Shown here piece after piece: positions 2,806 to 28,040 of a stretch of DNA of 64,000 nucleotides. Below the pieces are notes generated by a model that saw only the letters and a program-made list of their open reading frames with translations, had not been told where the DNA came from and did not search any database. Source of the DNA: Monocercomonoides exilis PA203 (taxonomy: Eukaryota; Protista; Preaxostyla); assembly GCA_001643675.2 (NCBI GenBank), contig LSRY02000018.1, positions 186,001 through 250,000 of the forward strand. The letters run 5' to 3'. Every line of letters begins with the position of its first letter. Within the stretch, counting starts at the first letter, position 1. A program made the position numbers and the translations under genes.

Positions 2806-5490
2806 TTCAGCCGCTGATCTTGCTGCAAATACAAAAATTTCTCAGCGTCTTCTCTCCGACTGCACTTCTTCGCTTGTCAATTCGTTCATGTTAATGGACA
2901 TCCAACAACAATTTTCTTTTTCTCTCTGAACATCTTTATCTCCTTCACTGCAATCCAAAGCTAAACAACTATCTTCTGCTAATCCTGCTGCTCCTGGCTC
3001 ACTTCCTCCACTTTTACTGCTTACCGTAACTTCTTCTCCTTCTCTTTCATTCAACTTTCATCGAGTTCAGTGCCAGACATCATCTTTCGTTGCAACTTGG
3101 AAAGATACAAAGAAATGCTTATTCAAATAATGAATAACAGCTGAAAGTGTGTTACGACGGAAGCGATTCTCCAAAAAGCAAAAAATAATTTGCACGTTAT
3201 CAACAACTGAATCAATTCTGGCCTTTTCATTTGGAAGCTGAAGCATATGAAGTGAAAAGGAAATGGTATAAAAGCAATTTTTGTTTGGAACGAATGATTG
3301 CGGGGATGGACTTCTTCAGATTTCGCAATGCTTTTTGTTCATCTGAACGAGAGGAAAATGAAACGATGAGTGAGAAAAGCAATTTTTTGGAAAACCCATG
3401 CTTGAATGGAAGTTGCAAAAGATTCTTGCACTGATCGGTTCGGTAAGTTGGAATTAGAATTATAAGAGAAACAGATGTTTTTGAAAAGCTTGTTGATACT
3501 ATTGAAGAAAGGCATTTTGAAGAGATGAAGAAGATGATATAAAGCAATGAGCTTTATTTTAATTCGATTAAAAGAGAAAATAGATGGAAAAAAAAATAGA
3601 AGAAATATTTTCATTTGGGCTGATTTTTGGCTCAATGAAAGATAAGCGATGATATAGACTTTAAATGAAAAGAAGATGAAGTCTCATGTATTTTTCTATG
3701 ATATAGAAAATGGAGAAAATTGGAAAATGGAAGGAATTGTAACGAAATTAGAAAAAATCCATCATTATAAGTGATTATGGTTTCAACCGCACTGAAGGTC
3801 AGTATGTGAAGAGGAACAAATGTTGAGGAAAGGAGGGTGAGGGAGGCGTCTTGGAGGAGGGAAATGAAGCAGTTGAGGGCATACTCGATAATGGAGCAAG
3901 TGTTTTGCTTTGTTTAACCACAGCCATCAGCATCGGCTCCATTGTTTGCTCCAATTTTATTCAGTGTAATGTGAGGGAACAAGCTTATGAATTTGGGTTA
4001 ATCCAATATTCCACTTTATCTGTTTCTATTTGATGAATCCGATGAACCGAATAAAAGGAAAGGAAATTTGTTAGCTGTTCAAAGACGAAAAGAAAAAAGA
4101 GAAATAACTATTATTTGTAAATTAGTTTCAATAATTTTGTTTTTTTATCTTCTTTTCTTTTCTTCTTGACAAATTTTCTCTTTGCAATGTTGTATTTTAC
4201 CAATTATGAATTTGCAATTTTGAAGTTTTATTTATTAATTTTAGGTTCATTTTTATTTTCCTTGATCAAAAAATTCTTTTTAATGAAAAAAGGTATGTAT
4301 TTTGCATATTCACATAAAACAAATATATATGACAGAAATAAAAGCTTAATACTAGCAAAAAATCAATTGAACTTTTTGATCAAAGAATACCACAATAGAT
4401 TTAATTTTTTCGATTTTTGATCTTTTTTTATGATATCAAAAAAAATCACCCATATCTTTGAATCAAACATGAAATGTTCAGAAGCAGAAATACTGTGTGT
4501 CAATGTTATCATTTGAATGGAGAAGGAATGAATGTCAGCTGGAATGGATGGAATGAATTGCAATTGAAGGAGTTATCAGAATAATGGATTCAATCAACAT
4601 TGTGTTATTCAAGCGAAAATGGATCGAAAATGTTGAACCAGCTTTCAATGGTATTAAGAAAACATGTTATCAAAGTTGGAATTCCAGAACTTGTTGTTTG
4701 CTGCAAAGAACAAAGTGTTTCAAAAGAAAAAATCATAAAATCAAGATCTGGAAGCTGTTTGCCAAAACGGAAAGTTTGTGAACTTGTTTGTTTCTCTTTA
4801 ATTGTTAATGATTCTTCAAAAAAAAATGGAAAATGTTGTTAACAACACAGATAAAAAAGATGGATTTCAAGCGAAAATTTCAAAGGCAGTTGACAACTGC
4901 ATTGTGAAGCTCTAGCCACAGTTAGAAAGGAGGACTTTAATAAAAGCAAATTTTCATTGCCTTTTTGTGATGGATCAAAGAATTATTTGGCTGTGGAACA
5001 CATCTTTTGACTGTTATTTCAATAGGAATGAATTTTGTGAAAAACAGATATTCAATTTGGATGAACCGACTGTGAGGGGATCAATAAACTCGAAGCTTAT
5101 TGTTTTTGATCCAACAAACTCGAAGCGTGAGTTTTCGCAAAGAACAACCAGAAATGGCAAATTTCACTATAGCTGATGCTGTAATTGCTGATGTGTTCGC
5201 ACTTCCTTCTGTAATTCTGAGGTCAAGATAACGTATTCCTTATGATATGAATCAGCTTTTGTTACAACCTCTGGATATCTGACCGAACGGAAGAGGCTGG
5301 ATGAACAGTGAACAATTGAATTAAAAATTCGAAAAAAATACTCCTTCCTTTTTTTTAACGAACAAAAAAAAGCTCATTCCACTTGAAAAATCTCTCAACT
5401 TTGAAACGTTATCATGAAAGCGAAATTGAAACATTCAACATTGATTTCGGAGAAAATTGATAGAACGCAGTGAGACAGGATTTGCTCCGA

Positions 5491-5527
5491 AATAATGAGT
5501 ATTAATTTAAATTATGGGCGGTTTAAG
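5491..5527. repeat. DIRS inverted terminal repeat core, left copy (3' end of element)
   Basis: aataatgagtattaatttaaattatgggcggtttaag matches the rc of 9701-9737 at 36/37; weaker similarity extends on both sides (cagg..tttgctcc; aacttcgcc). Confidence 0.9.
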
Positions 5528-6120
5528 TGAGAACTTCGCCCTCCCAAATATGACGTGGAAAAAAGGACGAGATGAAAATATAGATAATAACATGTTAAAT
5601 AATAAATAGAATATAATGAATTGTCCGCATTTCTTCACCGCCGACTTCGCCTTTTCGCCTTGGTCACGAAGACCAGAGGGCAGGGGACATAGCCCCTCGG
5701 AGCTGTCTCCTGCAGTCCGTGCAAGGATCCGGAGAGGCGAGTGTTCCAAAACGGAGCAGAAAGAAAAACCACTCTCGCTTTCGCGAGGCGTGGAAAAGAA
5801 AACTGCGTGCCCTTTGCTCTGCCCCCCGCTCTTCTGCTGCAGTGGCAGAGCAAGTCCGCTCACCACACGCTGTGTGGACTAGTCTGACTCTTCTCTTTGC
5901 ACTTTCTTGCCATGAATTAAAGGAGTAAGGTTCTTCTTCACGGTTTCTCTTCCTTTCCTGTTGGTCAATACAGGTTATGGGTGCCTTCGATATTTCTGGA
6001 CGGTTTCTCTCTTTCTATCTCCTCTTCTATCTCGCCACTTTTTTCTCGTCATATTCTTCCCAACATGTTTCTCTCTTATTCTCGCACCCAGACGCTCTGA
6101 GTCTCTCCATCCGCATTAAT

Positions 6121-6217
6121 ATTATTTCGGAGCAAATCCTGTCTCACTGCGTTCTATCAATTCGCAATAGAGCGTATCTACGAACGCAAGGAGCAGGTTT
6201 GCTCCTCAATAATGAGT
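6121..6217. repeat. Internal complementary region (ICR) of the DIRS element
   Basis: 6121-6162 is the exact rc of 5455-5496 (42/42). 6158-6217 is the rc of 9728-9787 (59/60). The two halves overlap at CAATT (6158-6162). Confidence 0.93.
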
Positions 6218-6849
6218 CTTGAATGCACTTTTCCATATATTTACTTTGATTAAATAATATTTTTATTTATTAATTTACTTATTAGTATTGATCTTAAACC
6301 CTCTTGCCTAGCACGTCATCGTGCGGCGGATGTTTAGAGAGCATGCGGATGATGGTGCGGTTCCTGTCTCTACTCCCTTCCTTTCTTTGTGTGTTTCCGA
6401 GGCGTAATCGACCGGGAATTCGTTTCCCTTGCGTTATTTATCATCCAACCTAGATATCTGACACCCTGCTTCCTCCGGTCTGTGCGCATATTCCTCTCTG
6501 TGAGGCAGTGTGTTTGCTTCCATTCAGCTCTCTTCTGCTGCTGGGAATTATGAGGGGTGATCTCAAAAGCTAGGGTGGTCGGGATGAGGCGTTCTGTGAC
6601 AAAGTTGCTTTCCTTTGCTTTCTCTCTTCTCTAAGCTATAAGTCTCGTTTCTTTGTCCGCTTTCTCCATCCTCATATCTTCTTCACCTCCAGCTTCTGAT
6701 ATCATTTCTGTGCACTCTTTCATCTCTAAATTCATTTTCTCGATGATCATTTCCTTTCTTTCTTGAAACTTCTCCGACTTTTCCACTTCTCCCGTTTGGG
6801 GATCAGGACTTTCAATTGTCTCCAGGATTTATTTCGTATCTTGAACCGG

Positions 6850-7700
6850 AAAACCGTAAAGTATTCCTGTTCCACTCTTGAACCTGGTCCACATCTCGTG
6901 TGTGCATTAACTGCTTTCCAAACCGAACCTTTTCTTCTTGATATGTGAATAATAACTTTAAGTCTAATCGAGAATGTGGTCAAAGTATCGTGTATATCAC
7001 ACTCTCTCTTTGAATAACTTCTAATTCTTCTTTAATTCTCTTTATCTTTGCAGGTTAACCTTCTTTGATATCAAACCATACATATTTATCTTAAAATGAA
7101 GTCCTGGATATATTAAGCCAATGTTGGAGCGTCTATACTGCATCGATGAGTGCATTTGAATGTTTGTTAATATCGATTTTAGTAATTATCCTATCTGTTA
7201 TCTATATCTGCACTTCTAATAATACTGTATTCTCTTTCAAAATAGATTCCTTCCTTCTCAATCTCTCCAGCTCAGCAAGCTCTAAAGTAACAAAATTACA
7301 GTGAGGATGAGGGCTCTCCTCTGAAGTGCTTGCGTGTCTGTTGAGTTATATGTGGTGTCTTCCCATTTAGTAATAACTGCAAAATCTCACACTGGTTAAC
7401 ATCATTTGCAGTTTCTCGACTTCTATCCTTCGTAAGTTTTTGAAAATATATCTATATCTTTCACATCACTTGTCTGATGAATCATTCCACTTGAAAGATT
7501 CGTAGTCGATAGGTTATCAATAAATCTTGCCAAGATTCACCTGGCATCGTTCTCGATGAGGTGTATGTTTCATCTGTTCATTCTCATCCAAAAATTGTTT
7601 AAATTTTCTTAGCTATCTCCACGTATCCGTTTTGTTCTTTTGATTAGTCAATATAGCTGCTGATATATCCTCTACTCCTACGTCTTCTCCCCATGTTTGA
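6850..7700 (-). pseudogene. Degenerate DIRS tyrosine recombinase
   Basis: Minus-strand remnants: RRALILTVI/TLELAELER (box A-like, ~7265-7320, frameshifted) and TTFSIRLKVIIH...VNAHTRCGPGSRVEQEYF (HSxR-like and H/W...Y boxes, ~6860-6983); many stops. Confidence 0.65.
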
Positions 7701-7844
7701 AAAAGTTTCCTTCTTGTATATTTACTTCTCCAGTCAAACACTAATTATTTTTCATGGGGGTGAATTCAAGTCATCATTTCTCATCTCGAAACGGTCAATC
7801 AGATGTTTCTTAATAATAGACTAGCACTGTCTGTTCTTCTGGCA

Positions 7845-7906
7845 TCTCTCTCTCTCTTTCTCTCTTTCTCTCTTTCTCTCTTTCTCTCTCTCTATCTTTC
7901 TCTCTC
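7845..7906. repeat. (CT)n/(CTTT) microsatellite inside the DIRS element
   Basis: Direct reading. Confidence 0.85.
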
Positions 7907-7980
7907 TTCAGAGAGGATAGTCTCCAAATAATTCTTCAGGGCACCGGAGCAATCGTGTCTGTAATATAATCTAGTCTTCT

Positions 7981-8250
7981 CGGTTCGAATATTTGAAATG
8001 TCTCTACAACTTTTTCCACTCTCACTGCATTGTCCGGTTTCTTCAAAGTCCGGCTGAGTGCATCTATCGGCATTTTCGCTGAGATATGTTGAGTCTTCTT
8101 CAATTTTCATCACACCGCACTATGCGGCTTATTTCTGTATCCGTCTCTCGCGGTCTCTAGCGGTCTCATGCTCTGTCTTTTCCTCGAGTTTTTTCGCGGA
8201 TTCACTTCTTCAATATTCTCGTGAAATTTCGCCGTTACTATATCTACACA
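7981..8250 (-). pseudogene. Degenerate RNase H C-terminus of DIRS pol
   Basis: Minus frame from 8088 reads HISAKMPIDALSRTLKKPDNAV, with DALSR at 8050-8064; resembles the HIPGxxNxxADALSR end of DIRS/Ty3 RNase H. Confidence 0.55.
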
Positions 8251-8904
8251 TGACTCGCGAAAATGCACTGTTCCTTATCTAATTATCGATTCGCAATCTC
8301 TCTCAATTACTTTCTCTATCCTTCTCTCACAGCAAACTCAGCTTTTTCTTCCTTCAAACCCTTTCGATCAAAAGCAATATGTCACTCCACTATAACCTCG
8401 CGACAATACACAGCAATCTTTTATCTCTCCGTCCCGTTATATTTCGCGGTTTCACTTTTGTAATTATTTCTCTTATATTGAATCGTATCCTATCTTATTA
8501 AAATTGATAATATTTCACTCTTTCAGTTTTGATATGTTGTTGTAATGCAGCTTGTCAGTATTCACTTTGCGAAGGCCTCTCTAATTACTGAGTTTTCTAT
8601 CTTAATTGTCATCTCGCTGTTAAGTGCGTCTATCTCTGCTATCTCCACTCTCATGATCTCAAGACTTAACGTTGTCTTGTTCCTCGTAAATATCTCTTTA
8701 TTGTGTGCAGCTTCATTAAAATTATCTAAATCTTTATTGTTATTAAATTATCCTTCTATTAATATCTCGCTGTAATATGTGTATCGATTCTCACAAATAT
8801 CCTTGTTATGTGTTTATGTGTATATTTTGTTGCTGCATTTATCCGTATCTCAAAAAGCTGCTCATCTCTTATTCTTAATAATCTTTTCTTCGTTGTAAGT
8901 TGAT

Positions 8905-9012
8905 TCTCTCTTCTCTCTCTGTCTCGCGGCTATGCGCGGCTCTCTCTTCTCTCTCTGTCTCGCGGCTATGCGCGGCTCTCTCTTCTCTTTCTGTCTCGCG
9001 GCTATGCGAGGC
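8905..9012. repeat. 36-bp tandem repeat x3 in the putative gag region
   Basis: Unit tctctcttctctctctgtctcgcggctatgcgcggc at 8905, 8941 and 8977 (third copy has 2 mismatches). Confidence 0.9.
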
Positions 9013-9700
9013 TCTTCTACCTTGAAAATTATATCAATATTCTATTGTTTCTCGTTTGTTTTGTTTAATTTGTATTCCACAGCATAATATGAATAAATTT
9101 TTTCAATATTGTGTATGTATATAATATTATTTTAAAATTTTGATAGGATATTCTTTCTTTATAATAATCTCTCTGCAATTTGTGGATCTATCTTTTAGAA
9201 TTCTTGTAATATCCAGCGATTTCATTATTTAACTACATCACTCTTCAATTCGCAGTTCCTTTTCCTAATAAATAAACAATATAATGTGTAGTTTTATTCT
9301 TTTTAAAAGCCTATAAAAATGTTATATCTTCATTTTGTTTAAATATCTCTCGATTTTTTGTGGTTTCTGTTTGTTCAATTGTCTCGCTGCACAATGTGGT
9401 TCCAATTCCAATAATTATCTCACAGAATTTTCCAGATTCTGTTCTTGATAAAATCTCTTCACAATGTGCAGCTTGCCGTTCGACATCTTCAGCTGTGCAC
9501 TTTCTTCCATTCCGGATGATGAATTTCATGCTTAAATCCTAGTAAATTCTTCACTAAAATACTCCACTTTGACCAGTGTTTAAATTTGATCTTATTCTCT
9601 TCCATCGCCGTCTCTGTGTTCTATTGAAACAGGTTGTTGCTTCATTTTCATTGCGGACAATTTGGATCAACTTTGAATTTGAGTATTGGCGAAGTTAGAT

Positions 9701-9737
9701 CTTAAACCGTCCATAATTTAAATTAATACTCATTATT
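9701..9737. repeat. DIRS inverted terminal repeat core, right copy (5' end of element)
   Basis: cttaaaccgtccataatttaaattaatactcattatt is the rc of 5491-5527 with 1 mismatch. Confidence 0.9.
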
Positions 9738-11248
9738 GAGGAGCAAACCTGCTCCTTGCGTTCGTAGATTCGCTCTATTGCGAATTGTCAAAGATTAGAA
9801 ATTCGAACATTGAATTCGTAATTTGAGATTTATTCTTTTCTTATTCATTTCAAATAAACAGTACTGATGAAAAACAAAAGGACACAAAAAACCAATCAAC
9901 CATCATATTTCCGTTTTTATGAAGAAACTGGTGAAATGTTCAGACGATTGGAAAGAAACATCTCAAAGAATCGAAATTATCAAAAAAAATTGTTTGATGT
10001 GAATTTTGACAATTGATATTTATTCCTCTCAAAACAAAAAGAGAGTGAGAATAGGAGCAAGTTTTTGAACATTTTTGGAAAAGAAAGGAAAACAAAGTCT
10101 GTTTGTGAACATTTCAAAGTGATAATAAATTCACAGAAACAATAAACAACAATATTTCTTGATTGTTCGCTTTTCTTTTGAAAAAGTCATTGTTCGACAC
10201 TTCAAGATTCATCATAAAATAATAGAAAGTGCGAACGGATTATTTTCAAGATTATGTTCCTTTTTGATTACAAATCTCGATGAAAGTTGAAGATTGATTT
10301 TCTTTCATATGAGATTGCTCAGCAAAAACTCAAAACCAACAATAAATATAAAAGCAAGTCAAATAATTGTTAAAAAAAAATTAAAAATAAAAATAAAAAT
10401 AAAAGCAAAATACAAAGCCACAAATTGATGGCTGAAATAAGATGCAATGCAGTCAAGACTGCAACCCAACAAACACCCATGCGCATCTTCCTTCGTGCTG
10501 CTTCCCCAAAACACGAAAGCCCCATCCCGCAGTTCCTCCGCCTTTGCTGCTCTTTCAGTGTTCGCTCTGGATCCTGCTCCCTTTTCCATCCGTTCCTGCA
10601 CCGCCTCTTCCAGATAATGGGCAGCGAGGAAGCACCGCTCATCGGTGTGCTGCTGTCAGGCATGCTTGGCGTTTCGCCGAGTGCTCCATTTCTTTTTCGC
10701 TGTTTCCAACTGCTTTCGCCACGCCTGCCACCCCCCATCCACTGCCCAAACTGCAAGCCCCACATCCTGCTCAAGTCGGCTGTTCTTCGCTTTTTCTTGC
10801 TGCATGCACCATCCTTGGCAACAGACAACCCGGCAGATTTCGCTGCGCTGTGCATCCTATGCAATGTCTCGCTGCTTCAAATCAATGAATAGGAGAATAC
10901 CTGCCAATAACCAAACACAAATCAACAAACAAAAATTAACAAAAATGAAAAATATTAAAAAACAAAAAATAAAAAAATAAAAAATAAAAATAATAAAGAG
11001 CAGCACAGACAGCAAAAACAGATATCCCTCGTCCTCTCAATCCCACTCCAAAAACACATACAAGACAAGCACACCCCTTGCTGAATATATCCCACACGCA
11101 TACACACACACACGCACACATGCACATCCAAGTCCATCACCCACTGCTGCACTCTTCATCACCAACTCAAATCATGAAACAAGGAATGTCTCCAAAGGAA
11201 TCAATCCCACCCGAAATGCCCATTCCCCCTCCAAAGTTAATGCCAACC

Positions 11249-11367
11249 TCAAGTCGGCAAACGAGGCGAAGGCAACAAAGGCGAAGGCTGCAAAGGTGAC
11301 AACACAAATTTCAGCCTTCCAGTTCCTTGCAACGCCAAAGAGGAAGAGGATGGAGAAGAAGAAGAAA

Positions 11368-11401
<34 letters not shown>

Positions 11402-14400
11402 CGATGATGATGGCTGCGGTTGCGCTGATGAAAATATCGAATCACAGTCAGAAGGAGACGCAACAAACTGAAAATCACAAAAACTCGTCCTGCTCTGCGC
11501 TTCCACTCCACGAATCGCTTCCACACATGGCTCACAACGCAGATGCGTGCTCGCACACTCCCAAGCGCTGCCCACAGGAACAGCTGCTGCTGCACATTCA
11601 CCATCCCCACAACCCCCACAACCACCACAACCACCACAACCACCACAACCACCAGAAGGAGAATGAGCACTGCCATCCGAACTGTCCGCCCCATCCTTCT
11701 CTTCTTCTCCTCCTTCCTCCAATTCCATCATTCTCTTCCTCTTTTCTCTCTTTCCCTTTCCATTTTCCTTTCCCTTCCCTTTTCCCCTCCTCCTCCCCAT
11801 CCCCCTTTCTTTCCTTCTGCTTTCTGCCTTTTCCTCCACAAACTTCAGAATACATCGCACAATATCCTCGTTCATCTCTGCTTCCTCCTCTTCTCCTGCT
11901 CCTTCGGCTCCTTCCTTCTTCCTTTTCTCTTTCTTCCTCTCCTTCTCTTTCTTCCTCTCCTTCTCCTTCCTCTCCTCCTCTTCCTGCACCATGTGCAGCG
12001 GCAGAAACGCTTTTCTCCCTCCTCCTTCTTCTTTCACCCACTCCGCCACATCTTCCTCATACCGCCACCAAAGCTTCCTCAAATACTCTTTCTTCTCCCA
12101 AACCCCTCCCTTCTCCATCATCTCCATCATCTCCATCATCTGCCTCACCAGCTCCCCCTTCAAACATTCCACAACATCCTCCTGCCTCATCTTCATCGGA
12201 TCCTCTTCCTCGTCTTCTTCACGCTGCAAATATTCCAACAGAAATGAAGACGACGAAGACAATAATGCCGGAAACCTCATCAAGCTTGGCTCACCCATTT
12301 CTGAATCACACTGCAAATGCAATAAATCAACAGATGCATGCTCCATCTCCTTCATCTCTTTCATCCTCTTCTCCCCATGCTTCTTTCTTTTATCCCTCTT
12401 TCCGTCTTCTTTACCTTCCTTCTCTTCCTTCTCTTCCTTCTCTTCCTTCTCTTCCTTCTCTTTCTTGTTTTCCTTGCCTTCTTCTCCAGACACTTCACAA
12501 CACCCTTCAACCCCATCCTGATGGCAGCCCACTCTTCCTCTTCCTCCTCCACACACGCTCCTCCTCCTTCTGCGTCTTCTCTCCAAAAAATAGTCCTCCT
12601 CATATGTCAGATTCACCCCATCTCCACCACTTTCTCTCTCTGCCCATGCGCCCTTTCCCTCCTCCTCCTCCTCTTCCTCTTTATCATCATCATCATCTTC
12701 TTCTTCTTCTTCTTCTTCTTCTTCTTCTTCTTCTTCTCCTTCTTCTTCTTCTTCTTCTCCTCCTCCTCCTCCTCCTCCTCCTTCCAGCCCCTCTTCTTGC
12801 ATGTTGTGCAGCATCAGCAGCTGCTTCAGCGGAAGAGGACAGCAGCCCAGTTGCCTGCCTGCCGCTTCCCCATCCATCTCAAACAGCCCATCCTCCACTT
12901 TCTTTCTCTCTTCTCTTCTCCCCTCTTTTCTGTCAAACTTCCTTCCTTTCCTCCCTTCTCCTTTCTTCTTCCTCTCATTTTCACAATCTTCGTCCATCCA
13001 CTTCTCTCTTCTTCCTCCTCTTCTTATGCTGCTGCTGCTACTACTACTACTACCACTTCTGCTGCTGCTGCTCGGTGGAGTCAGCTCAGGCGAACTGCCA
13101 CAAACTGAATGCAACAACTCAGAAGTTTCATCTTTCTCCTTTCTATCCCATATTATCGAAGAAGAAGAAGGCGAAGAAGAAGAAGGGGAAGAAGTTGTTG
13201 CACATGTTGATGATGATGTTTTGATGGCAGGCATAATCTGAATCTCTGCAATCGGCGGATGAACAGCAACAGGAGAGTGAAGATGCCCGCACTTCCCACA
13301 CTCCTCACATTCTCTGCCTCTCCCATCTCCTCCCTCCCCAGCTGCGCCCTCCACAGGCACAAGCACTTCCTTCTCCTCCATCCCTCCCATCGCATCCATT
13401 GCCCCCACCTCCGCCATCTCACACGCCACGCTCCCCATGCTCCCCACACTCGCCAGACACTTCTGCTCAGGCTCTGCAACAAGAACACCTCCCCACCCAC
13501 CACCACCACCACCACAATCCCCCACCCCTCTCCCCCATCCTCCTCCCTCACACCCGCCCCCATATTCACACTCCCCCGAACGATACAGCGCCCCTGCTCC
13601 CACAAACACCGAAGGCGCCACACTCCCAGACACAAACTCAAAGAACTCTCGCGACAGCATCCTCGGCATCCACACAAACCGCTCCCAAACTCCGCTTCTC
13701 CCTTGCCCACCCCTGCCTCCTCCCTGCACAACCCATCTCCCTCCCTCTTCACTCTGCCTCCTCTCCTCCTTTTCCATCTTCCTCTCTGCTGCACGCTCCA
13801 TTGCACGCTCCATTGCACTCTCTCGTGCTCCTCGCCTGCCCTCACATCCTGCAAGAGGACAATTCAGCCGCGTCGAAGACAATGATCCCGAAGAGGAATG
13901 AGTCCGATGCAACTCAACAGCGAAATCAGAAGAGGGAAGAGGAAGAGGAGGAAGAGAAGAAAGATGATGATGAACCAATGCAATCCATATCACTGCTGCC
14001 ATTTCCTTGTCCAAGTCTTTCCCCTCCAACTGCCCCTTCTTCCTCTTCCTCTCTCATTCTCTTCCTTCCTCCCCCTCTTCCTTTTCCCATCTCTTTCTCC
14101 ATCTCTTTCTCTTCCCCATTACCAGCCACATCCACATCCACATCTGCATCTGCATCTGCTCCCCCTTCCCTCCTCCTCGCCAGCTCCTTCTCCCACCGCC
14201 TGTTGTCCGCATAGATTATCACCCCGCCTACCACCAACACTCCAATCAAAAACACAAATATCGTCGCTGTCACCACAACCACATTCTGCTCATCGCTGCT
14301 CAGCCCCCCTCCTTTCCTTCCTTCGCTGCCCTCTCCTCCCCTCACATCCTTATTCCCTGCCCCATCGCCCCCACCTCCCTCTCCCTCTCCCTTTCCCCCT

Positions 14401-14639
14401 CCTTCTCCCCCTCCTCCCCTCCTTCTCCCCTTTCCTCTCCAGGCCTCCTCTCGCATTCCCTCTTCTCATTCAGAAAATACCCCTTCTGGCACCGCACCAC
14501 AACACACTCCCCTGCTCCATCAAACGCATATTCATCTGCCTGCACCCCTACCCCATACACCCCATTCCGCACAAGCCCACTCCCCAGCCTTCTCTCCAAC
14601 ATGCTTTTCACTCCTCTTGCCCCGTCTTCCTCGCCCGCA

Positions 14640-14682
<43 letters not shown>

Positions 14683-17544
14683 ATTCCGCTTCTGATCCTC
14701 CCAATGCTGCTGCTTCCAGAGTCAGCAATCTGCACTTCTCTCCACTCTCCAGCACCTCCCACTCCATCGGCACCTCTGCCAGCGATGCCAGCGACTCAAA
14801 CAGCCCATAGCTCTCTTCCTCTTCCAGCACAGCACTCTCCAGCCGCCGATTCCGCGGAGAATACGCCACCACCCAGTCTGCCGCAAGAACTCCTCCACCA
14901 CCTCCTCCTCCCTCATCCCCATCCTCATCCCCATCCCCAACCCCATTCCCGTCCTCACCCCCTCTCAATCCCTCCGACGGCCACTGCCCAAACACAAGCG
15001 ATTCAGCTGACTTTTCCCACTCCCACCGCTTGATGTCAAACAGCGTGAAGAACACATCCTCGTTCTCCCCAAACCCAGCCGTCTCATTCAGCCTGCTCAA
15101 GTCAAGCGGCTCCTCAATGTGCCCATCAGCACCCATGCCCGCCTGCCCTCTTTTCCTCCCATCCTGCGCGCCACTCACCTTCTTCATCGCCCTCTTCGCC
15201 ACCCTCTTTGCCTCCATCCTCCCCTCTTTCTTTCTCTCTCCAGATTTCTTTCTCTCTCCTTTTTCCTCTCCTTCTTCCTCTTCCTTTTTCTCTTCCTCTT
15301 CCCTCCATCTCTGCAGCGTCTTCGCCGACGTCTCCCACCCTGCATACTTCGCTCCAATCGCCACATTCGCTGTGTTCTCCAGCGTCGTCCTCCCCGCAGA
15401 CGCCACAACCACCTTCCCCAGCCGCTTTTCGTGCACAAACGCTGCAAACACACACGACGCCGACTCCCCAATCCCGTCGGTCAGCACAAGAACACGGTGC
15501 CCATCAAACAGCGATGGTGCTGCCGTTGTTGCGCGCGGCCATGCCGATGACGGATTCGTCGTCTCTGCTCCCCTTGACTCCGCACCGCCGCCCACAAACG
15601 ACAGAAACGGATTCGTCTTGTTCGTGTTGAACGAAAACACCCGCGAAAATGAAACATTCCCACACGCACTCGCCTTTCCTCTGCCAAAATGCCCTTTTTG
15701 CGTTTTTGATCCAAGAGCCACCGTTCAAATCTTCCCCTTCCTCTCCCTCACTCTCTTTCCTCCTTTTCATCTCTCCTTCACTCCCCATCTTTCTATTTGC
15801 CTTCCACTTTGTCTTCCTCTTCGCCTTCGCTTCTGTCTTCGCCTTCCCATTCCCGTCTCCCTTCCCCAAATCACAAGACACTTCAAAGGTGTCTCCAATC
15901 TGCTTCCACTCGTCTGTTCCATGCAGCGTCTTGTACTCCACAAACTCTCCTTCCCCACGCCGCCGCCACAGCTCCGCCGCCCCAAAACTTGCCTCTGTCC
16001 CCAGCATCTGACTCTGCGGGAATACTGGAAACTCGCCCGGGAACAGAAGCGACAGAACTTGCAGCGCAAGCGAAGGGCTGCGCCCAGCTGCCGAGCGGAT
16101 GTCGATGATCAGCGTGCAGTTCAGATTAGTAGGTGGCACAGATCCTTCAGCTAACGACGGAGAAATCGGAGAGGAAGAAGCAGAAAGTGAGGAAATCAGA
16201 GATTGCTGCATAGTCTTCAGCGCATCAGCCGCAGCTGCCCCAAATGACACCTCGTTCTCCGGCTCAAAGTTGAAGATGCGAAACACACCCAGATGCATCG
16301 ACACGCAAAACGACACACTGAAATCGTCTGTCTCTGCAATCTTCACAAATACATCATCCGACAAAGTGGACGATAACGACGACGATGGCGATGATGACAA
16401 CGGGGAAGCATCTGGCATATAGTCAACCCAGCTCGCTGCACTTCTGAGCGGAATTACCAGCTTCAGGGGGCTCTTTCTGGAATTTTCTGCCAGTTTGTAC
16501 AACCGTCGATAGTCCTGAGGGTGATGAAAGCACACAATCGACTTGCTGTCAACTATATTGAGGGAACGAAACGCAAATCGGTCAGCCAATGACATCGATG
16601 CATGAACACGCCCCGTACTTGAACTTTGGATGCGCTTGTCTGGCATCAAATCTGCTCCATTCGTCAGCGAAGCACGAATAGCCTTTGTGTCTGAAGCACT
16701 CCTAACATATGGCTGTTGAAGAATCTTCAGCGCATCTGTTGGTTCAGTGCCTCCAAAAAATGTCAGAGTCTGGGGCTTTGAGAATGTTTCGATCGGACGC
16801 CTGCAAAATGATCGAAGGATTGCTTCGTTCATTCGCAGTAATGGATCACGAATATACAAAAGATGCTCGTTTGCCCATTCCCGAATCCAATCTTCAATTG
16901 GAACAATACAAGTGTCTGTACAATTTTCTCCTTCAATTTCAAATCCAGAAACATAAAATGATTTTAGACTTGAATCATCGTTTTCCTTTTTCATATCTAT
17001 TGCATTTGTAAATACGCTGTCAACCCACAAAGTCCATGTATCAATCTTTCCTTCGTCATCGTGATTGGCCTCTAGCGAAAATGGATAATACCATTCATAA
17101 AGTTCGCTACATCTCATCGAATATCGAGTTGTTCCCTGCGAAAAGCTTTTTATCAATTTTGAAAATTCAACAAATTTCTCGTAAATTTCGCCTTCTTCTT
17201 CTTCTATGCGGTTAAGTTTTTCCTTCAAAATCAAAAAAGCATTAGCATTTTTGCCGTTTTTCACTTCAAAATGATATGACTGAATAGTATTCTCAATAAT
17301 CTGAAGCATTGTGGACTTTAAAACTGAAAAATTACCAAACTTGTTATAAAAATACATATAATTTGAAAATTGATTCACGTTGCAAAATTGAAAATATTTT
17401 AAGCAAACAAAAAAAGAAAAAAAGCACATTTTCATTTCTTAATCGTTGTTCAAAAGTATGAGCCTCTTCGAATGGGGCCATCAGGGTGGGGCACAAAAAA
17501 CATATTTGAATCCAGTTAAGAAGATATATGCATCCCCAAAGCAT
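11249..17544 (-). CDS. S41 peptidase-like type I membrane protein, copy A (frameshifts near 15705, 14420 and 13950)
   Basis: Mirror of 18094-24369; ORFs 15504-17435, 14342-15721, 13926-14456 and 11249-14029 join through small, mostly homopolymer, indels. Confidence 0.6.
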
Positions 17545-17766
17545 TTATATCTCCAAAAACAAGATTTTTAATAAAACTTATGATCTGTAACATAACAAAT
17601 TTATTCCAACAATTATCAAAATTATTTTTGAAAATACAAGACTGTTAACGTAATTAAAAAGAAATAATTTTACGTGTGACCGAAAGAATAGTTGACAATT
17701 CAATGAAGGAGAAAGATCTATTAGTCAATTATCATTTCATTTGTTTTAAAAAGAAATAAATTTTAA

Positions 17767-17871
17767 TACATTTGTATATGTTGGGTTGAATCAAAAATAG
17801 AAACAAAATTTTTATATAATATAAAATATATAATTCATTAATAATATCTAATTAAATAATCATCAGATATT
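17767..17871. promoter_or_regulatory. 105-bp unique AT-rich palindrome spacer within a probable shared bidirectional promoter (17545-18093)
   Basis: Arm complementarity stops at 17766/17872; divergent ATGs at 17544 (-) and 18094 (+). Confidence 0.55.
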
Positions 17872-20800
17872 TTAAAATTTATTTCTTTTTAAAACAAATG
17901 AAATGATAATTGACTAATAGATCTTTCTCCTTCATTGAATTGTCAACTATTCTTTCGGTCACACGTAAAATTATTTCTTTTTAATTACGTTAACAGTCTT
18001 GTATTTTCAAAAATAATTTTGATAATTGTTGGAATAAATTTGTTATGTTACAGATCATAAGTTTTATTAAAAATCTTGTTTTTGGAGATATAAATGCTTT
18101 GGGGATGCATATATCTTCTTAACTGGATTCAAATATGTTTTTTGTGCCCCACCCTGATGGCCCCATTCGAAGAGGCTCATACTTTTGAACAACGATTAAG
18201 AAATGAAAATGTGCTTTTTTTCTTTTTTTGTTTGCTTAAAATATTTTCAATTTTGCAACGTGAATCAATTTTCAAATTATATGTATTTTTATAACAAGTT
18301 TGGTAATTTTTCAGTTTTAAAGTCCACAATGCTTCAGATTATTGAGAATACTATTCAGTCATATCATTTTGAAGTGAAAAACGGCAAAAATGCTAATGCT
18401 TTTTTGATTTTGAAGGAAAAACTTAACCGCATAGAAGAAGAAGAAGGCGAAATTTACGAGAAATTTGTTGAATTTTCAAAATTGATAAAAAGCTTTTCGC
18501 AGGGAACAACTCGATATTCGATGAGATGTAGCGAACTTTATGAATGGTATTATCCATTTTCGCTAGAGGCCAATCACGATGACGAAGGAAAGATTGATAC
18601 ATGGACTTTGTGGGTTGACAGCGTATTTACAAATGCAATAGATATGAAAAAGGAAAACGATGATTCAAGTCTAAAATCATTTTATGTTTCTGGATTTGAA
18701 ATTGAAGGAGAAAATTGTACAGACACTTGTATTGTTCCAATTGAAGATTGGATTCGGGAATGGGCAAACGAGCATCTTTTGTATATTCGTGATCCATTAC
18801 TGCGAATGAACGAAGCAATCCTTCGATCATTTTGCAGGCGTCCGATCGAAACATTCTCAAAGCCCCAGACTCTGACATTTTTTGGAGGCACTGAACCAAC
18901 AGATGCGCTGAAGATTCTTCAACAGCCATATGTTAGGAGTGCTTCAGACACAAAGGCTATTCGTGCTTCGCTGACGAATGGAGCAGATTTGATGCCAGAC
19001 AAGCGCATCCAAAGTTCAAGTACGGGGCGTGTTCATGCATCGATGTCATTGGCTGACCGATTTGCGTTTCGTTCCCTCAATATAGTTGACAGCAAGTCGA
19101 TTGTGTGCTTTCATCACCCTCAGGACTATCGACGGTTGTACAAACTGGCAGAAAATTCCAGAAAGAGCCCCTGAAGCTGGTAATTCCGCTCAGAAGTGCA
19201 GCGAGCTGGGTTGACTATATGCCAGATGCTTCCCCGTTGTCATCATCGCCATCGTCGTCGTTATCGTCCACTTTGTCGGATGATGTATTTGTGAAGATTG
19301 CAGAGACAGACGATTTCAGTGTGTCGTTTTGCGTGTCGATGCATCTGGGTGTGTTTCGCATCTTCAACTTTGAGCCGGAGAACGAGGTGTCATTTGGGGC
19401 AGCTGCGGCTGATGCGCTGAAGACTATGCAGCAATCTCTGATTTCCTCACTTTCTGCTTCTTCCTCTCCGATTTCTCCGTCGTTAGCTGAAGGATCTGTG
19501 CCACCTACTAATCTGAACTGCACGCTGATCATCGACATCCGCTCGGCAGCTGGGCGCAGCCCTTCGCTTGCGCTGCAAGTTCTGTCGCTTCTGTTCCCGG
19601 GCGAGTTTCCAGTATTCCCGCAGAGTCAGATGCTGGGGACAGAGGCAAGTTTTGGGGCGGCGGAGCTGTGGCGGCGGCGTGGGGAAGGAGAGTTTGTGGA
19701 GTACAAGACGCTGCATGGAACAGACGAGTGGAAGCAGATTGGAGACACCTTTGAAGTGTCTTGTGATTTGGGGAAGGGAGACGGGAATGGGAAGGCGAAG
19801 ACAGAAGCGAAGGCGAAGAGGAAGACAAAGTGGAAGGCAAATAGAAAGATGGGGAGTGAAGGAGAGATGAAAAGGAGGAAAGAGAGTGAGGGAGAGGAAG
19901 GGGAAGATTTGAACGGTGGCTCTTGGATCAAAACGCAAAAAGGGCATTTTGGCAGAGGAAAGGCGAGTGCGTGTGGGAATGTTTCATTTTCGCGGGTGTT
20001 TTCGTTCAACACGAACAAGACGAATCCGTTTCTGTCGTTTGTGGGCGGCGGTGCGGAGTCAAGGGGAGCAGAGACGACGAATCCGTCATCGGCATGGCCG
20101 CGCGCAACAACGGCAGCACCATCGCTGTTTGATGGGCACCGTGTTCTTGTGCTGACCGACGGGATTGGGGAGTCGGCGTCGTGTGTGTTTGCAGCGTTTG
20201 TGCACGAAAAGCGGCTGGGGAAGGTGGTTGTGGCGTCTGCGGGGAGGACGACGCTGGAGAACACAGCGAATGTGGCGATTGGAGCGAAGTATGCAGGGTG
20301 GGAGACGTCGGCGAAGACGCTGCAGAGATGGAGGGAAGAGGAAGAGAAAAAGGAAGAGGAAGAAGGAGAGGAAAAAGGAGAGAGAAAGAAATCTGGAGAG
20401 AGAAAGAAAGAGGGGAGGATGGAGGCAAAGAGGGTGGCGAAGAGGGCGATGAAGAAGGTGAGTGGCGCGCAGGATGGGAGGAAAAGAGGGCAGGCGGGCA
20501 TGGGTGCTGATGGGCACATTGAGGAGCCGCTTGACTTGAGCAGGCTGAATGAGACGGCTGGGTTTGGGGAGAACGAGGATGTGTTCTTCACGCTGTTTGA
20601 CATCAAGCGGTGGGAGTGGGAAAAGTCAGCTGAATCGCTTGTGTTTGGGCAGTGGCCGTCGGAGGGATTGAGAGGGGGTGAGGACGGGAATGGGGTTGGG
20701 GATGGGGATGAGGATGGGGATGAGGGAGGAGGAGGTGGTGGAGGAGTTCTTGCGGCAGACTGGGTGGTGGCGTATTCTCCGCGGAATCGGCGGCTGGAGA

Positions 20801-20953
20801 GTGCTGTGCTGGAAGAGGAAGAGAGCTATGGGCTGTTTGAGTCGCTGGCATCGCTGGCAGAGGTGCCGATGGAGTGGGAGGTGCTGGAGAGTGGAGAGAA
20901 GTGCAGATTGCTGACTCTGGAAGCAGCAGCATTGGGAGGATCAGAAGCGGAAT

Positions 20954-20996
<43 letters not shown>

Positions 20997-23900
20997 TGCG
21001 GGCGAGGAAGACGGGGCAAGAGGAGTGAAAAGCATGTTGGAGAGAAGGCTGGGGAGTGGGCTTGTGCGGAATGGGGTGTATGGGGTAGGGGTGCAGGCAG
21101 ATGAATATGCGTTTGATGGAGCAGGGGAGTGTGTTGTGGTGCGGTGCCAGAAGGGGTATTTTCTGAATGAGAAGAGGGAATGCGAGAGGAGGCCTGGAGA
21201 GGAAAGGGGAGAAGGAGGGGGAGGAGGGGGAGAAGGAGGGGGAAAGGGAGAGGGAGAGGGAGGTGGGGGCGATGGGGCAGGGAATAAGGATGTGAGGGGA
21301 GGAGAGGGCAGCGAAGGAAGGAAAGGAGGGGGGCTGAGCAGCGATGAGCAGAATGTGGTTGTGGTGACAGCGACGATATTTGTGTTTTTGATTGGAGTGT
21401 TGGTGGTAGGCGGGGTGATAATCTATGCGGACAACAGGCGGTGGGAGAAGGAGCTGGCGAGGAGGAGGGAAGGGGGAGCAGATGCAGATGCAGATGTGGA
21501 TGTGGATGTGGCTGGTAATGGGGAAGAGAAAGAGATGGAGAAAGAGATGGGAAAAGGAAGAGGGGGAGGAAGGAAGAGAATGAGAGAGGAAGAGGAAGAA
21601 GGGGCAGTTGGAGGGGAAAGACTTGGACAAGGAAATGGCAGCAGTGATATGGATTGCATTGGTTCATCATCATCTTCTTCCTCTTCCTCCTCTTCCTCTT
21701 CCTCTTCTGATTTCGCTGTTGAGTTGCATCGGACTCATTCCTCTTCGGGATCATTGTCTTCGACGCGGCTGAATTGTCCTCTTGCAGGATGTGAGGGCAG
21801 GCGAGGAGCACGAGAGAGTGCAATGGAGCGTGCAATGGAGCGTGCAGCAGAGAGGAAGATGGAAAAGGAGGAGAGGAGGCAGAGTGAAGAGGGAGGGAGA
21901 TGGATTGTGCAGGAAGGAGGCAGGGGTGGGCAAGGGAGAAGCGATGTTTGGGAGCGGTTTGTGTGGATGCCGAGGGTGCTGTCGCGAGAGTTCTTTGAGT
22001 TTGTGTCTGGGAGTGTGGCGCCTTCGGTGTTTGTGGGAGCAGGGGCGCTGTATCGTTCGGGGGAGTGTGAATATGGGGGCGGGTGTGAGGGAGGAGGATG
22101 GGGGAGAGGGGTGGGGGATTGTGGTGGTGGTGGTGGTGGGTGGGGAGGTGTTCTTGTTGCAGAGCCTGAGCAGAAGTGTCTGGCGAGTGTGGGGAGCATG
22201 GGGAGCGTGGCGTGTGAGATGGCGGAGGTGGGGGCAATGGATGCGATGGGAGGGATGGAGGAGAAGGAAGTGCTTGTGCCTGTGGAGGGCACAGCTGGGG
22301 AGGGAGGAGATGGGAGAGGCAGAGAATGTGGGGAGTTTGGGAAGTGCGGGCATCTTCACTCGCCTGTTGCTGTTCATCCGCCGATTGCAGAGATTCAGAT
22401 TATGCCTGCCATCAAAACATCATCATCAACATGTGCAACAACTTCTTCGCCTTCTTCTTCTTCGCCTTCTTCTTCTTCGATAATATGGGATAGAAAGGAG
22501 AAAGATGAAACTTCTGAGTTGTTGCATTCAGTTTGTGGCAGTTCGCCTGAGCTGACTCCACCGAGCAGCAGCAGCAAAAGTGGTAGTAGTAGTAGCAGCA
22601 GCAGCAGCATCAGAAGAGGAGGAAGAAGAGAGAAGTGGATGGACGAAGATTGTGAAAATGAGAGGAAGAAGAAAGGAGAAGGGAGGAAAGGAAGGAAGTT
22701 TGACAGAAAAGAGGGGAGAAGAGAAGAGAGAAAGAAAGTGGAGGATGGGCTGTTTGAGATGGATGGGGATGCGGCAGGCAGGCAACTGGGCTGCTGTCCT
22801 CTTCCGCTGAAGCAGCTGCTGATGCTGCACAACATGCAAGAAGAGGGGCTGGAAGGAGGAGGAGGAGGAGGAGGAGGAGGAGGAGGAGAAGAAGAAGAAG
22901 AAGAAGAAGATGATGATGATAAAGAGGAAGAGGAGGAGGAGGAGAAAGAGGAGGAGGGAAAGGGCGCATGGGCAGAGAGAGAAAGTGGAGGAGATGGGGT
23001 GAATCTGACATATGAGGAGGACTATTTTTTGGAGAGAAGACGCAGAAGGAGGAGGAGCGTATGTGGAGGAGGAAGAGGAAGAGTGGGCTGCCATCAGGAT
23101 GGGGTTGAAGGGTGTTGTGAAGTGTCTGGAGAAGAAGACAAGGAAGAGAAGGAAGAGAAGGAAAACAAGAAAGAGAAGGAAGAGAAGGAAGAGAAGGAAG
23201 AGAAGGAAGACGAGGAAGGCAAAGAAGACGGAAAGAGGGAGAAAAGAAAGAAGCATGGGGAGAAGAGGGTGAAAGGGATGAAGGAGATGGAGCATGCATC
23301 TGTTGATTTATTGCATTTGCAGCGTGGGTCGGAAATGGGTGAGCCAAGCTTGATGAGGTTTCCGTCATTATTGTCTTCGTCGTCTTCATTTCTGTTGGAA
23401 TATTTGCAGCGTGAAGAAGACGAGGAAGGGGATCCGATGAAGATGAGACAGGAGGATGTTGTGGAGTGTTTGAAGGCGGAGCTGGTGAGGCAGATGATGG
23501 AGATGATGGAGATGATGGAGAAGGGAGGGGTTTGGGAGAAGAAAGAGTATTTGAGGAAGCTTTGGTGGCGGTATGAGGAAGATGTGGCGGAGTGGGTGAA
23601 AGAAGAAGGAGGAGGGAGAAAAGCGTTTCTGCCGCTGCACATGGCGCAGGAAGAGGAGGAGAGGAAGGAGAAGGAGAGGAAGAAAGAGAAGGAGAGGAAG
23701 AAAGAGAAAAGGAAGAAGGAAGGAGCCGAAGGAGCAGGAGAAGAGGAGGAAGCAGAGATGAACGAGGATATTGTGCGATGTATTCTGAAGTTTGTGGAGG
23801 AAAAGGCAGAAAGCAGAAGGAAAGAAAGGGGGATGGGGAGGAGGAGGGGAAAAGGGAAGGGGAAGGGAAAGAGAGAAAAGAGGAAGAGAATGATGGAATT

Positions 23901-26840
23901 GGAGGAAGAGGGAGAAGAAGAGAAGGATGGGGTGGACAGTTCGGATGGCGGTGCTCATTCTCCTTCTGGTGGTTGTGGTGGTTGTGGGGGTTGTGGGGAT
24001 GGTGAATGTGCAGCAGCAGCTGTTCCTGTGGGCAGCGCTTGGGAGTGTGCGAGCACGCATCTGCGTTGTGAGCCATGTGTGGAAGCGATTCGTGGAGTGG
24101 AAGCGCAGAGCAGGACGAGTTTTTGTGATTTTCAGTTTGTTGCATCTCCTTCTGACTGTGATTCGATATTTTCATCAGCGCAACCGCAGCCATCATCATC
24201 ATCATCATCATCATCATTTTGTTCTTCTTCTTCTTCTTCTTCTTCTTCTCCATCCTCTTCCTCTTTGGAGTTGCAAGGAACTGGAAGGCTGAAATTTGTG
24301 TTGTCGCCTTTGCAGCCTTCGCCTTTGCTGCCTTCGCCTTTGCTGCCTTCGCCTCGTTTGCCGACTTGAGGTTGGCATTAACTTTGGAGGGGAAATGGGC
24401 ATTTCGGCTGGGATTGATTCCTTTGGAGACATTCCTTGTTTCATTATTTGAGTTGGTGATGAAGAGTGCAGCAGTGGGTGATGGACTTGGATGTGCATGT
24501 GTGCGTGTGTGTGTGTATGCGTGTGGGATATATTCAGCAAGGGGTGTGCTTGTCCTGTGTGTGTTTTTGGAGTGGGATTGAGAGGACGAGGGATATCTGT
24601 TTTTGCCGTCTGTGCTGCTTTTTATCATTTTTATTTTTGTTGTTTTTTCATTTTTTGTTTTTTGATATTTTTCATTTTTGTAAATTTTTGTTTGTGGATT
24701 TGTGTTTGGTTATTGGCAGGTGTTCTCCTATTCATTGATTTGAAGCAGCGAGACATTGCAAAGGATGCACAGCGCAGCGAAATCTGCCGGGTTGTCTGTT
24801 GCCAAGGATGGTGCATGCAGCAAGAAAAAGCGAAGAACAGCCGACTTGAGCAGGATGTGGGGCTTGCAGTTTGGGCAGTGGATGGGGGGTGGCAGGCGTG
24901 GCAAAAGCAGTTGGAAACAGCGAAAAAGAAATGGAGCACTCGGCGAAACGCCAAGCATGCCTGACAGCAGCACACCGATGAGCGGTGCTTCCTCGCTGCC
25001 CATTATCTGGAAGAGGCGGTGCAGGAACGGATGGAAAAGGGAGCAGGATCCAGAGCGAACACTGAAAGAGCAGCAAAGGCGGAGGAACTGCGGGAGGGGG
25101 CTTTCGTGTTTTGGGGAAGCAGCACGAAGGACGATACGCATGGGTGTTTGTTGGGTTGCAGTCTTGACCGCATTGCATCTTATTTCAGCCATCAATTGGT
25201 GCCTGTATTTTGCTTTTATTTTTATTTTTATTTTTATTTTTTTTTTAACAATTATTTGACTTGCTTTTATATTTATTGTTGGTTTTGAGTTTTTGCTGAG
25301 CAGTCTCATATGAAAGAAAATCCATCTTCAACTTTCATCGAGATTTGTAATCAAAAAGGAACATTATCTTGAAAATAATCTGTTCGCACTTTCTATTATT
25401 TTATGATGAATCTTGAAGTGTCGAACAATGACTTTTTAAAAAGAAAAGCGAACAATCAAGAAAAATTGTTGTTTATTGTTTCTGTGAATTTATTATCACT
25501 TTGAAATGTTCACAAACAGACTTTGTTTTCCTTTCTTTTCCAAAAATGTTCAAAAACTTGCTCCTATTCTCACTCTCTTTTTGTTTTGAGAGGAATAAAT
25601 ATCAATTGTCAAAATTCGCAACAACAAACAATTTTTGAAAAATTACGATTCTTTGAGATGTTTCTTTCCAATCGTCTGAACATTTCACCAGTTTCTTCAT
25701 AAAAACGGAAATATGATGGTTGATTGGTTTTTTGTGTCCTTTTGTTTTTCATCAGTACTGTTTATTTGAAATGAATAAGAAAAGAATAAATCTCAAATTA
25801 CGAATTCAATGTTCGAATTTCTAATCTTTGACAATTTTCTCCGAAATCAATGTTGAATGTTTCAATTTCGCTTTCATCATAACCTTTCAAAGTTGAGAGA
25901 TTTTTCAAGTGGAATGAGCTTTTTTTTTGTTGGTTAAAAGAAAGGAAGGAGTATTATTTTCGAATTTTTAATTCAATTGTTCACTGTTCATCCAGCCTCT
26001 TCCGTTCGGTCAGATATCCAGAGGTTGTAACAAAAGCTGATTCATATCATAAGGAATACGTTATCTTGACCTCATAATCACAGAAGGAAGTGCGAACACA
26101 TCAGCAATTACTGCAACAGCCAGAGTGGAATTTGCCATTTATGGTTGTTCTTTGATAAAACTCAGGTTTTTCATTTGTTGGATCAAAAACAATAAGCTTC
26201 GAGTTTATTGATCCCCTCACAGTCGGTTCATCCATATTGAATATCTGTTTTTCACAAAATTCATTCCTTTTGAAATAACAGTCAAAAGATGTGTTCCACA
26301 GCCAAAGAATTCTTTGATCCATCACAAAAAGGCAATGAAAATTTGCTTTTATTAAAGTCCTCCTTTCTAGCTGTGGCTAGAGCTTCACAATGCAGTTGTC
26401 AACTGCCTTTGAAATATTCGCTTGAAATCCATCTTTTTTATCTGTGTTGTTAACAACATTTTCCATTTTTTTTTTTTGAAGAATCATTAACAATAAAAGA
26501 GAAACAAACAAGTTTACAAACTTTCCGTTTTGGCAAACAGCTTCCAGATCTTGATTTTATGATTATTTCTTTTGAGACACTTTGTTCTTTGCAGCAAACA
26601 AGTTCTGGAATTCCAACTTTGATAACATGTTTTCTTAAAACCCTCCAGAGCTGGTTCAGCATTTTTGATCCATTTTCGCTTGAATAACACAATGTTGATT
26701 GAATCCATTATTCTGATAACTCCGTCAATTGCATGTCATTCCATCCATTCCAGCTGACATTCATTCCTTCTCCATTCAAATGATAACATTGACACATTGT
26801 ATTTCTGCTTCTGAACACTTCATAAATGATTCAAAGATAT
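17872..26840. repeat. Right arm of giant inverted repeat (~8.97 kb, uninterrupted)
   Basis: Starts ttaaaatttatttctt (rc of 17751-17766) and ends tgattcaaagatat at 26840 (rc of 4452-4465). Confidence 0.95.
18094..24369 (+). CDS. S41 peptidase-like type I membrane protein, copy B (~2050 aa; one frameshift at ~19170)
   Basis: Signal-peptide-like exon 1 (MLWGCIYLLNWIQICFLC) with GT donor at 18211 and in-frame AG at 18298 or 18322. Motifs LIIDIRSAAGRSPSLALQVLSLLFP and VLVLTDGIGESASCVFAAFV. Cys segment ECVVVRCQKGYFLNEKREC. TM segment VVVVTATIFVFLIGVLVVGGVIIYA. Long E/K/G/S-rich tail. Confidence 0.65.
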
Positions 26841-27152
26841 TTTCATTTCCACTCTGATGAACACGATCAAATATCCAAATCATCAAAAATATAAATAATG
26901 TCAAATTTTTTGTTGTCATTGAAATGATTGTTTGAATTTTAAGAAAAAGTGGAATCAATCAATACGTTTAATCTTCATAAAAACCATTCAAATCTAGGAT
27001 AATTATTTTTTAAAAGTTTATTTATACATCATATTTCTTGAATATATACTTTTTTTCAAAAACAAAAACAAAAAAAAAACTTTTCAATCCTTTGATCCAT
27101 GTTATTTTGAAAAAAGGGTTGAATAATTATTTGTTTTTTTCTTTTCAAGAAC

Positions 27153-28040
27153 ATGCAGAAAGATAAAGTTGAATTATCGACATATTTTCGAATGTTTAAT
27201 GATAACAGTTGTTGTTGCGAATTGTACAGAACTCAAATTCTTGATATGTCAGAAACAAAGTGCAGTTTATGTGGTTCATTTATGTTTCTTGGAAGAGATT
27301 CAATATCATCATTTATTCTTCGATGTCCAAATTGATAAAGAAGAAAATCACCATTTACCAAATTGATTAATTATCATTCAACATTGGGGATTTCAAAATT
27401 GTTGATGTTGCTTCTTTTTCTTTTCCAACATTTCAATATTACTCAAATATCTATTCCACTTTGCGTGGACCCATCTACCGTTTCTTTCTTCGCAAATACA
27501 GCTCGAAGAATAAGGTTGGAGTCATTGCTATCGGAATCATTGTGACTTGGAGGAAAAAATATGATTGTTGAAATTGATGAAATGTTGCTTTGTCGAAGAA
27601 AGAACAAAAGAGGAAAAAGGAAAAAACAGATTTGGCTTTTCGAAATGGTTGAAAGGAATGATTTGGGCAAACAAGGTAATTTTTCAGTTGTCAGAGTGAG
27701 AAATAGAAAAAAGAAAGCCTAATTCCAATTATTAATACAATCATAAGAAAAGATAGCATGATTTTCTCCGATGAATGGGCTGCATATAAATCATAACCTG
27801 AATATGGATATAAAACAAGACAGCGTGTCACAAGTATCGTTACAGAACTGAAGATGGAGTGTGCGCTAATATTATTGAAGGTTTATTATCGCAATTAAGA
27901 AATTTATCAACAACTACAGGAATAAAAGATCGGTTCATTGATGATACGATTGCAGAATTTATTGCTTTCAAAAGAAAGAATCTGAATTTCGTCAAATGGG
28001 GGAAAATACGGACTTTCAAGCTTTTTTTGCACAAAGCACA
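27153..28040 (+). mobile_element. Merlin / IS1595 (ISXO2-like) DDE transposase pseudogene
   Basis: CSLCGS...LRCP zinc finger; LGGKNMIVEIDE...KRGKRKKQIWLFEMVER; SLIPII...IFSDEWAAYKS; CHKYRY..EDGVCANIIEGLLSQLR; interrupted by stops and frameshifts. Confidence 0.85.

Follow-up and report, generated by a model that had tools for sequence, protein, structure and literature searches.

Junctions of a DIRS1-like element family in Monocercomonoides exilis indicate crossover at A/TT with a single base shared with the target

Introduction

How much sequence must a DIRS1-like retroelement share with its target in order to integrate? The question is raised by a DIRS1-like, apparently non-autonomous element on the minus strand of a 64,000-nucleotide window (positions 186,001 to 250,000 of contig LSRY02000018.1, assembly GCA_001643675.2) of the oxymonad Monocercomonoides exilis PA203, for which a filled site, an empty site and the joined element ends can be read in the same stretch of DNA. 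An earlier annotation of this DNA, hereafter the original prediction, proposed that the family integrates through a core of 5 base pairs (bp), AATTG. Comparison with sibling copies leads to another rule: the family crosses over at A/TT (the slash marks the crossover), only the A must be shared with the target, and AA is preferred after it. This one-base rule departs from the textbook DIRS1 model, which has 3 bp of identity. The identity of the element and the one-base rule, taken jointly, are very probably correct.

In Dictyostelium DIRS-1 the complementary DNA (cDNA) is a single strand and predominantly linear, and polymerase chain reaction gave no junction product (PMC7192593). The reverse transcriptase (RT) acts in trans, the internal complementary region (ICR) has its role at a stage following reverse transcription, and the double-stranded circle that the DIRS model of 1985 assumed has not been caught so far (PMC7192593). 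A 2011 survey of DIRS elements left the excavates uncertain, and no searchable paper links DIRS to Monocercomonoides. By itself the window copy is a dead element of an ordinary kind. Its family, however, offers many junctions that can be read, empty sites on palindromes and nearly intact masters, and so allows a precise cut-site prediction, namely A/TT, one-base identity and one polarity, which matters because the specificity of the DIRS recombinase is experimentally untested (PMC7192593).

The element and its target site

The boundaries that are constant in the family place the element at 5457–9785 (4329 bp; 5455–9787 had been given earlier), and in its own orientation it starts with ATT and ends with TATCAA. 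The left (5′) inverted terminal repeat (ITR), at 9688–9785 on the minus strand, opens with ATT at 9785–9783, and the right (3′) ITR, at 5457–5540 on the same strand, carries TATCAA at its end. Self-comparison shows the two to be imperfect and inverted (67 of 78 positions identical between 5463–5540 and 9688–9763), and it returned no split direct repeats, the trait of PAT, Ngaro and VIPER elements. The ICR (6121–6220, minus strand; its end had been placed at 6217) is complementary to both joined ends, as originally described: it matches their reverse complement at 98 of 100 positions (E 9e-48) through a single CAATT at 6158–6162, with the obligatory A at 6160, and a hairpin fold is predicted for it (z −5.35). 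In element orientation the junction reads TATCA-ATT-CGC, in which CA plus ATT had been the proposed core. This architecture of ITRs, ICR and a tyrosine recombinase remnant supports the DIRS1-type identity assigned before. One ICR mismatch, at 6175, is private to the window copy, the other copies having A there in public contigs, and thus arose at or after the window insertion.

The family resembles DIRS1-like elements such as Dictyostelium DIRS-1 (PMC3266345) in its non-identical ITRs, in a 3′-placed ICR that spells the end junction, in the NTT start without target-site duplication (TSD), and in the order gag, RT/RNase H (RH), a putative methyltransferase (MT) and tyrosine recombinase (YR) of its full-length siblings. 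Unlike those elements, the window copy is dead and has no RT, its ITRs are short (~80–100 bp), and its ICR and 3′ ITR lie ~580 bp apart.

The element sits in a host palindrome (4452–26840), whose two ~9-kb arms (4452–17774 and 17864–26840; 97.2% identical after removal of the element) flank an 89-bp spacer (17775–17863) and are the source of the filled and empty pair. The element flanks continue into the sister arm on either side of one CAATT at 25832–25836 of the plus strand (96% identity over 161 bp and 100% over 168 bp), with the crossover A at 25834, which upholds both the uninterrupted target and the insertion in one arm only. AATTG was likewise verified on the plus strand at both ends, at 5455–5459, where 5455–5456 are target-derived in the family model, and at 9783–9787, where 9786–9787 are target-derived. 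The absence of a true TSD also stands, since the empty site and the ICR each hold a single core and no duplication is evident in sibling flanks. The junction at 9787 is spanned without differences by one contig from a public DNA run, probably of the same sample as the assembly; no contig bridges the 5455 junction among the public contigs listed. At the ends and the ICR, depth exceeds that of the flanks by a factor of tens, which is normal for a repeat family. The inner parts of the arms are 99–100% identical and the outer parts 93–97%, and the long open reading frame (ORF) of the palindrome (19105–24369, 1754 amino acids) has no Pfam match.

The base shared with the target

In the same assembly, 12 sibling loci with 13 copies were retrieved through recombinase protein matches and not through element ends, and all 13 copies have an ICR. 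Each sibling end was compared with the ICR of its own copy, which gave 11 5′ junctions, 11 3′ junctions and nine siblings with both ends; decayed or missing ends were omitted, namely the 3′ end in L005 and L012 and the 5′ end in L004 and L006. At the 5′ junction ATT is found in 10 of 11 siblings, the exception being the decayed L010, and the two bases before it are variable, with CA in three of 11. At the 3′ junction TATCA (or its subfamily variant) followed by A is kept in all 11, after which the sequences diverge. The trinucleotides there are AAA in seven siblings, ATG in two, and AAT and AGA in one each; ATT is absent, and in none of the 11 does TT follow the shared A. Circle and target share 3, 1, 1, 1, 2, 5, 2, 3 and 3 bp in the nine two-ended siblings, and the only position common to all nine is the A. 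Against the flank background, the crossover A in 11/11 has a probability of about 1e-5, and the AA next to it in 7/11 one of 0.003.

These junctions bear directly on the constant AATTG core. Such a core is true of the window site, and CA also precedes ATT in 3/11 siblings, but CAATT stands at both junctions in none of the nine two-ended copies, and public contigs of other copies diverge into unrelated flanks behind 9785 (13 contigs) or 9786 (16 contigs). Given an ATT match, the CA extension is in any case expected in 7.5–9% of sites. A family core of 5 bp is thus contradicted and scarcely credible. Its constancy in other copies had been set beforehand as a refuting test; the core is not constant there, yet no flanking duplications are evident. 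By expectation, about 1% of A sites would carry the full CAATT, and the window site is a best-case match in the tail of this distribution, not a requirement, although a soft preference for junction-like targets may perhaps have favored it.

The textbook view, in which circle and target must agree in the 3 bp ATT, draws on the ATT at both ends of the window copy, on the equal end trinucleotides of 18 of 28 published elements and on the ATT in a paralog of the L005 5′ flank. The 3′ ATT is absent from all 11 siblings, however, including five pristine copies in which end and ICR agree at 20/20 and 30/30 positions (L001 with ATG, L002 with AAT, and L009, L011a and L011b with AAA). Decay is therefore not the cause of the missing TT, and post-insertion mutation was rejected as an explanation on the same grounds. 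Since each junction is informative alone, later shuffling of flanks cannot rescue a 3-bp or a 5-bp requirement either. For the window family the 3-bp model is contradicted, and we regard it as very improbable. A poly(A) tail as the source of the 3′ AAA was also considered and rejected, as paralogs of the L007 and L010 flanks have the A-runs too and the window insertion gained none.

ATT is the commonest terminal trinucleotide of DIRS1 elements (PMC3266345). By our own count of Table 3 in that paper, 10 of its 28 DIRS1 elements have unequal end trinucleotides, and 7–8 of these 10 have the polarity of the window family, in which the start equals the junction and the end keeps only its first one or two bases.

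Several observations weigh against the one-base reading or limit how far it can be taken. Each end is represented by only 11 junctions, all of a single genome and some of them decayed. No empty sites of sibling insertions were found within the retrieved loci, so these junctions lack a paired empty site and small indels are possible at them. Paralogous matches of L005, L007 and L010 stop exactly at the junction, and the two flanks of these copies may not represent one target. At the window site itself, precise loss of the element from the sister arm may be an alternative to insertion. Any leftward bias is not significant (A at −1 in 7/11, p 0.21; CA in 3/11, p 0.054) and does not point to either strand as the one exchanged. 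Finally, the strandedness of the substrate cannot be revealed by sequence.

The one-flank paralogs of L007, L005 and L010 correspond to window positions 26967–27425, L004:13632–15030 and L012:1–134, respectively, with edges exactly at the DIRS junction. These edges suggest either that duplications abut the points of DIRS insertion or that shuffling has exchanged flanks among the copies.

Mechanism of integration

We consider it somewhat more probable than the contrary that the window insertion is best explained overall by copying in trans, crossover at A/TT and exchange of a single strand. An RT-less, decayed derivative of a ~6-kb DIRS1-like family would have depended on trans-acting enzymes for its copying and for its integration into one arm of the palindrome. 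The ICR would rebuild the joined ends of the single-stranded cDNA and pair with them; since it can pair in this way and the junction folds, a duplex substrate would be available without second-strand synthesis. The recombinase would then exchange one strand only at the ICR-paired junction, needing one base of identity, and the insertion would be completed by host replication or repair, in the manner of integron cassettes inserted at G/TT.

The polarity of the products favors such an exchange. In all nine two-ended siblings the TT derived from the circle lies at the 5′ junction and target bases lie at the 3′ junction. If two staggered exchanges spanned a mismatched overlap, two mirror classes of product would be expected after replication, and only one class is seen (9/9); unbiased resolution of a mismatched two-strand exchange would give uniform polarity with a probability of about 0.5^9. 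Exchange of one strand, with replication or repair to complete it, would give exactly the single polarity observed. These products favor single-strand chemistry without showing it, and we hold its chances to be evenly balanced.

The same junction table, together with the classical circle model (PMC7192593), would also fit a double-stranded circle resolved by two staggered exchanges with a mismatch-tolerant overlap, like the coupling sequences of Tn916, if repair or replication always favored the same strand, or by cuts that are nearly blunt. This needs a near-complete strand bias, given that the opposite polarity is seen in none of the nine two-ended siblings, and double-stranded circles have not been detected for DIRS-1; we consider it unlikely, though a serious competitor. 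A further alternative dispenses with a covalent circle: the linear cDNA ends would be held on the ICR and joined to the target strand by recombinase and host repair. DIRS-1 cDNA is mainly linear and a competent intermediate, and the junction region folds strongly, both of which agree with this scheme. Tyrosine recombinase chemistry, however, requires, at exact positions, a 5′-OH and a 3′ extension that can be cleaved, and we judge a non-circular route to be rather improbable.

Single-strand exchange has a precedent in integrons, whose integrase recombines a folded single strand at G/TT and needs identity of the first base only (PMC2811028). The window family resembles the class 1 integron integrase IntI1 acting on attC and attI1 (PMC2811028) in having a tyrosine recombinase, an NTT crossover triplet (A/TT versus G/TT) and identity of the first triplet base only. 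Unlike the DIRS family, integrons are bacterial, have no RNA step, use a dedicated attI site and rely on recognition of extrahelical bases; the resemblance lies in the products only. A tentative generalization, to which we give somewhat less than even credence, would be that DIRS1-like cDNA integrates by one integron-like exchange at N/TT with single-base identity, TT serving as a recombinase binding signal and both the 3-bp core and the double-stranded circle being dispensable. Our literature search found no integron-like proposal for DIRS, although earlier subscription literature may discuss relaxed 3′ trinucleotides.

Coding remnants and relatives

The original prediction was silent on the missing RT and the dead recombinase of the window copy. 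No stop-free stretch in the element exceeds 123 codons, and a Pfam search of ten stop-free pieces returned nothing meaningful. The piece at 6750–7031 matches proteins of M. exilis that carry PF00589, the phage integrase domain, and the whole remnant at 6373–7560 (minus strand) matches such proteins with E values of 1e-50 to 1e-64. This tyrosine recombinase gene is broken into at least four frame pieces with several stops and frameshifts, and its first catalytic arginine and other motif residues are substituted. An alternative genetic code was rejected as the cause of the stops, because host ORFs use the standard code.

Comparison with full-length siblings identifies the C-terminal end of RNase H and the MT-like end of pol at 7586–8097 (minus strand), with RT and most of RNase H not detectable in the window copy. 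A remnant of the start of the gag-like ORF1 lies at 9505–9724 (minus strand; weak tblastn matches to ORF1 of L009 and L003, E 1e-3 to 1e-4). Three 36-bp tandem repeats at 8905–9015 (minus strand) are common to the full-length copies; L001 has ~15 copies of this repeat (L001:8492–9074), which lies in the coding region of the family. The window copy aligns with the full-length siblings only in the first ~250 bp, in these repeats and in the part that begins with the RNase H end. As RT is undetectable and the recombinase broken, the window copy is, on its sequence, a non-autonomous DIRS1-like derivative, which was most likely mobilized in trans.

Full-length siblings measure 6.0–6.5 kb, and L001 and L003 encode RT and RNase H. 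L001 has pristine ends and a 1066-codon open frame (L001:9602–12799) with an apparently complete recombinase at its end; together with L002, L003 and L009 it is a candidate source of the trans-acting enzymes. MT-like motifs were seen by eye in the A1 consensus and in L001; PF05869 matches are confined to distant relatives, the siblings giving no Pfam match for an MT domain. L011 holds an RT-less tandem pair ~900 bp apart (L011:1479–6477 and L011:7390–11822). These two sisters, L011a and L011b, have intact ends and ICR and 5′ bodies 72–87% identical to that of the window copy. The second is 87% identical to it over the first 790 bp, and the flank upstream of this sister, which ends in TGACA, is likewise similar, whereas the targets differ (shared CAA, 3 bp) and the insertions are separate.

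Judged from these copies, structurally complete DIRS1-like elements appear to exist in a metamonad, M. exilis. Streblomastix strix and metagenomes from JGI and ENA also encode related RT/RNase H proteins, with 28–44% identity. The closest by RT come from JGI metagenomes and Streblomastix, and these relatives point toward a broader oxymonad lineage. When an RT alignment was run against metagenomes and against viral sequences, each scan found a single distant locus; L013, one of the two, has neither ITR nor ICR. The original prediction of a possibly uncharacterized oxymonad DIRS family holds for the oxymonad host and fails for AATTG as the integration core.

Other features of the window

A pair of 255-bp inverted repeats (49211–49465 and 49880–50134, 98% identical) encloses 414 bp and resembles a miniature inverted-repeat transposable element; related sequence adjoins the L012 element downstream. 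Ordinary host genes include a DEAD-box helicase piece at 43818–44708 and a calponin-homology repeat protein at 60756–61940, and a 2746-amino-acid ORF at 29849–38089 has only a weak Ly49 match.

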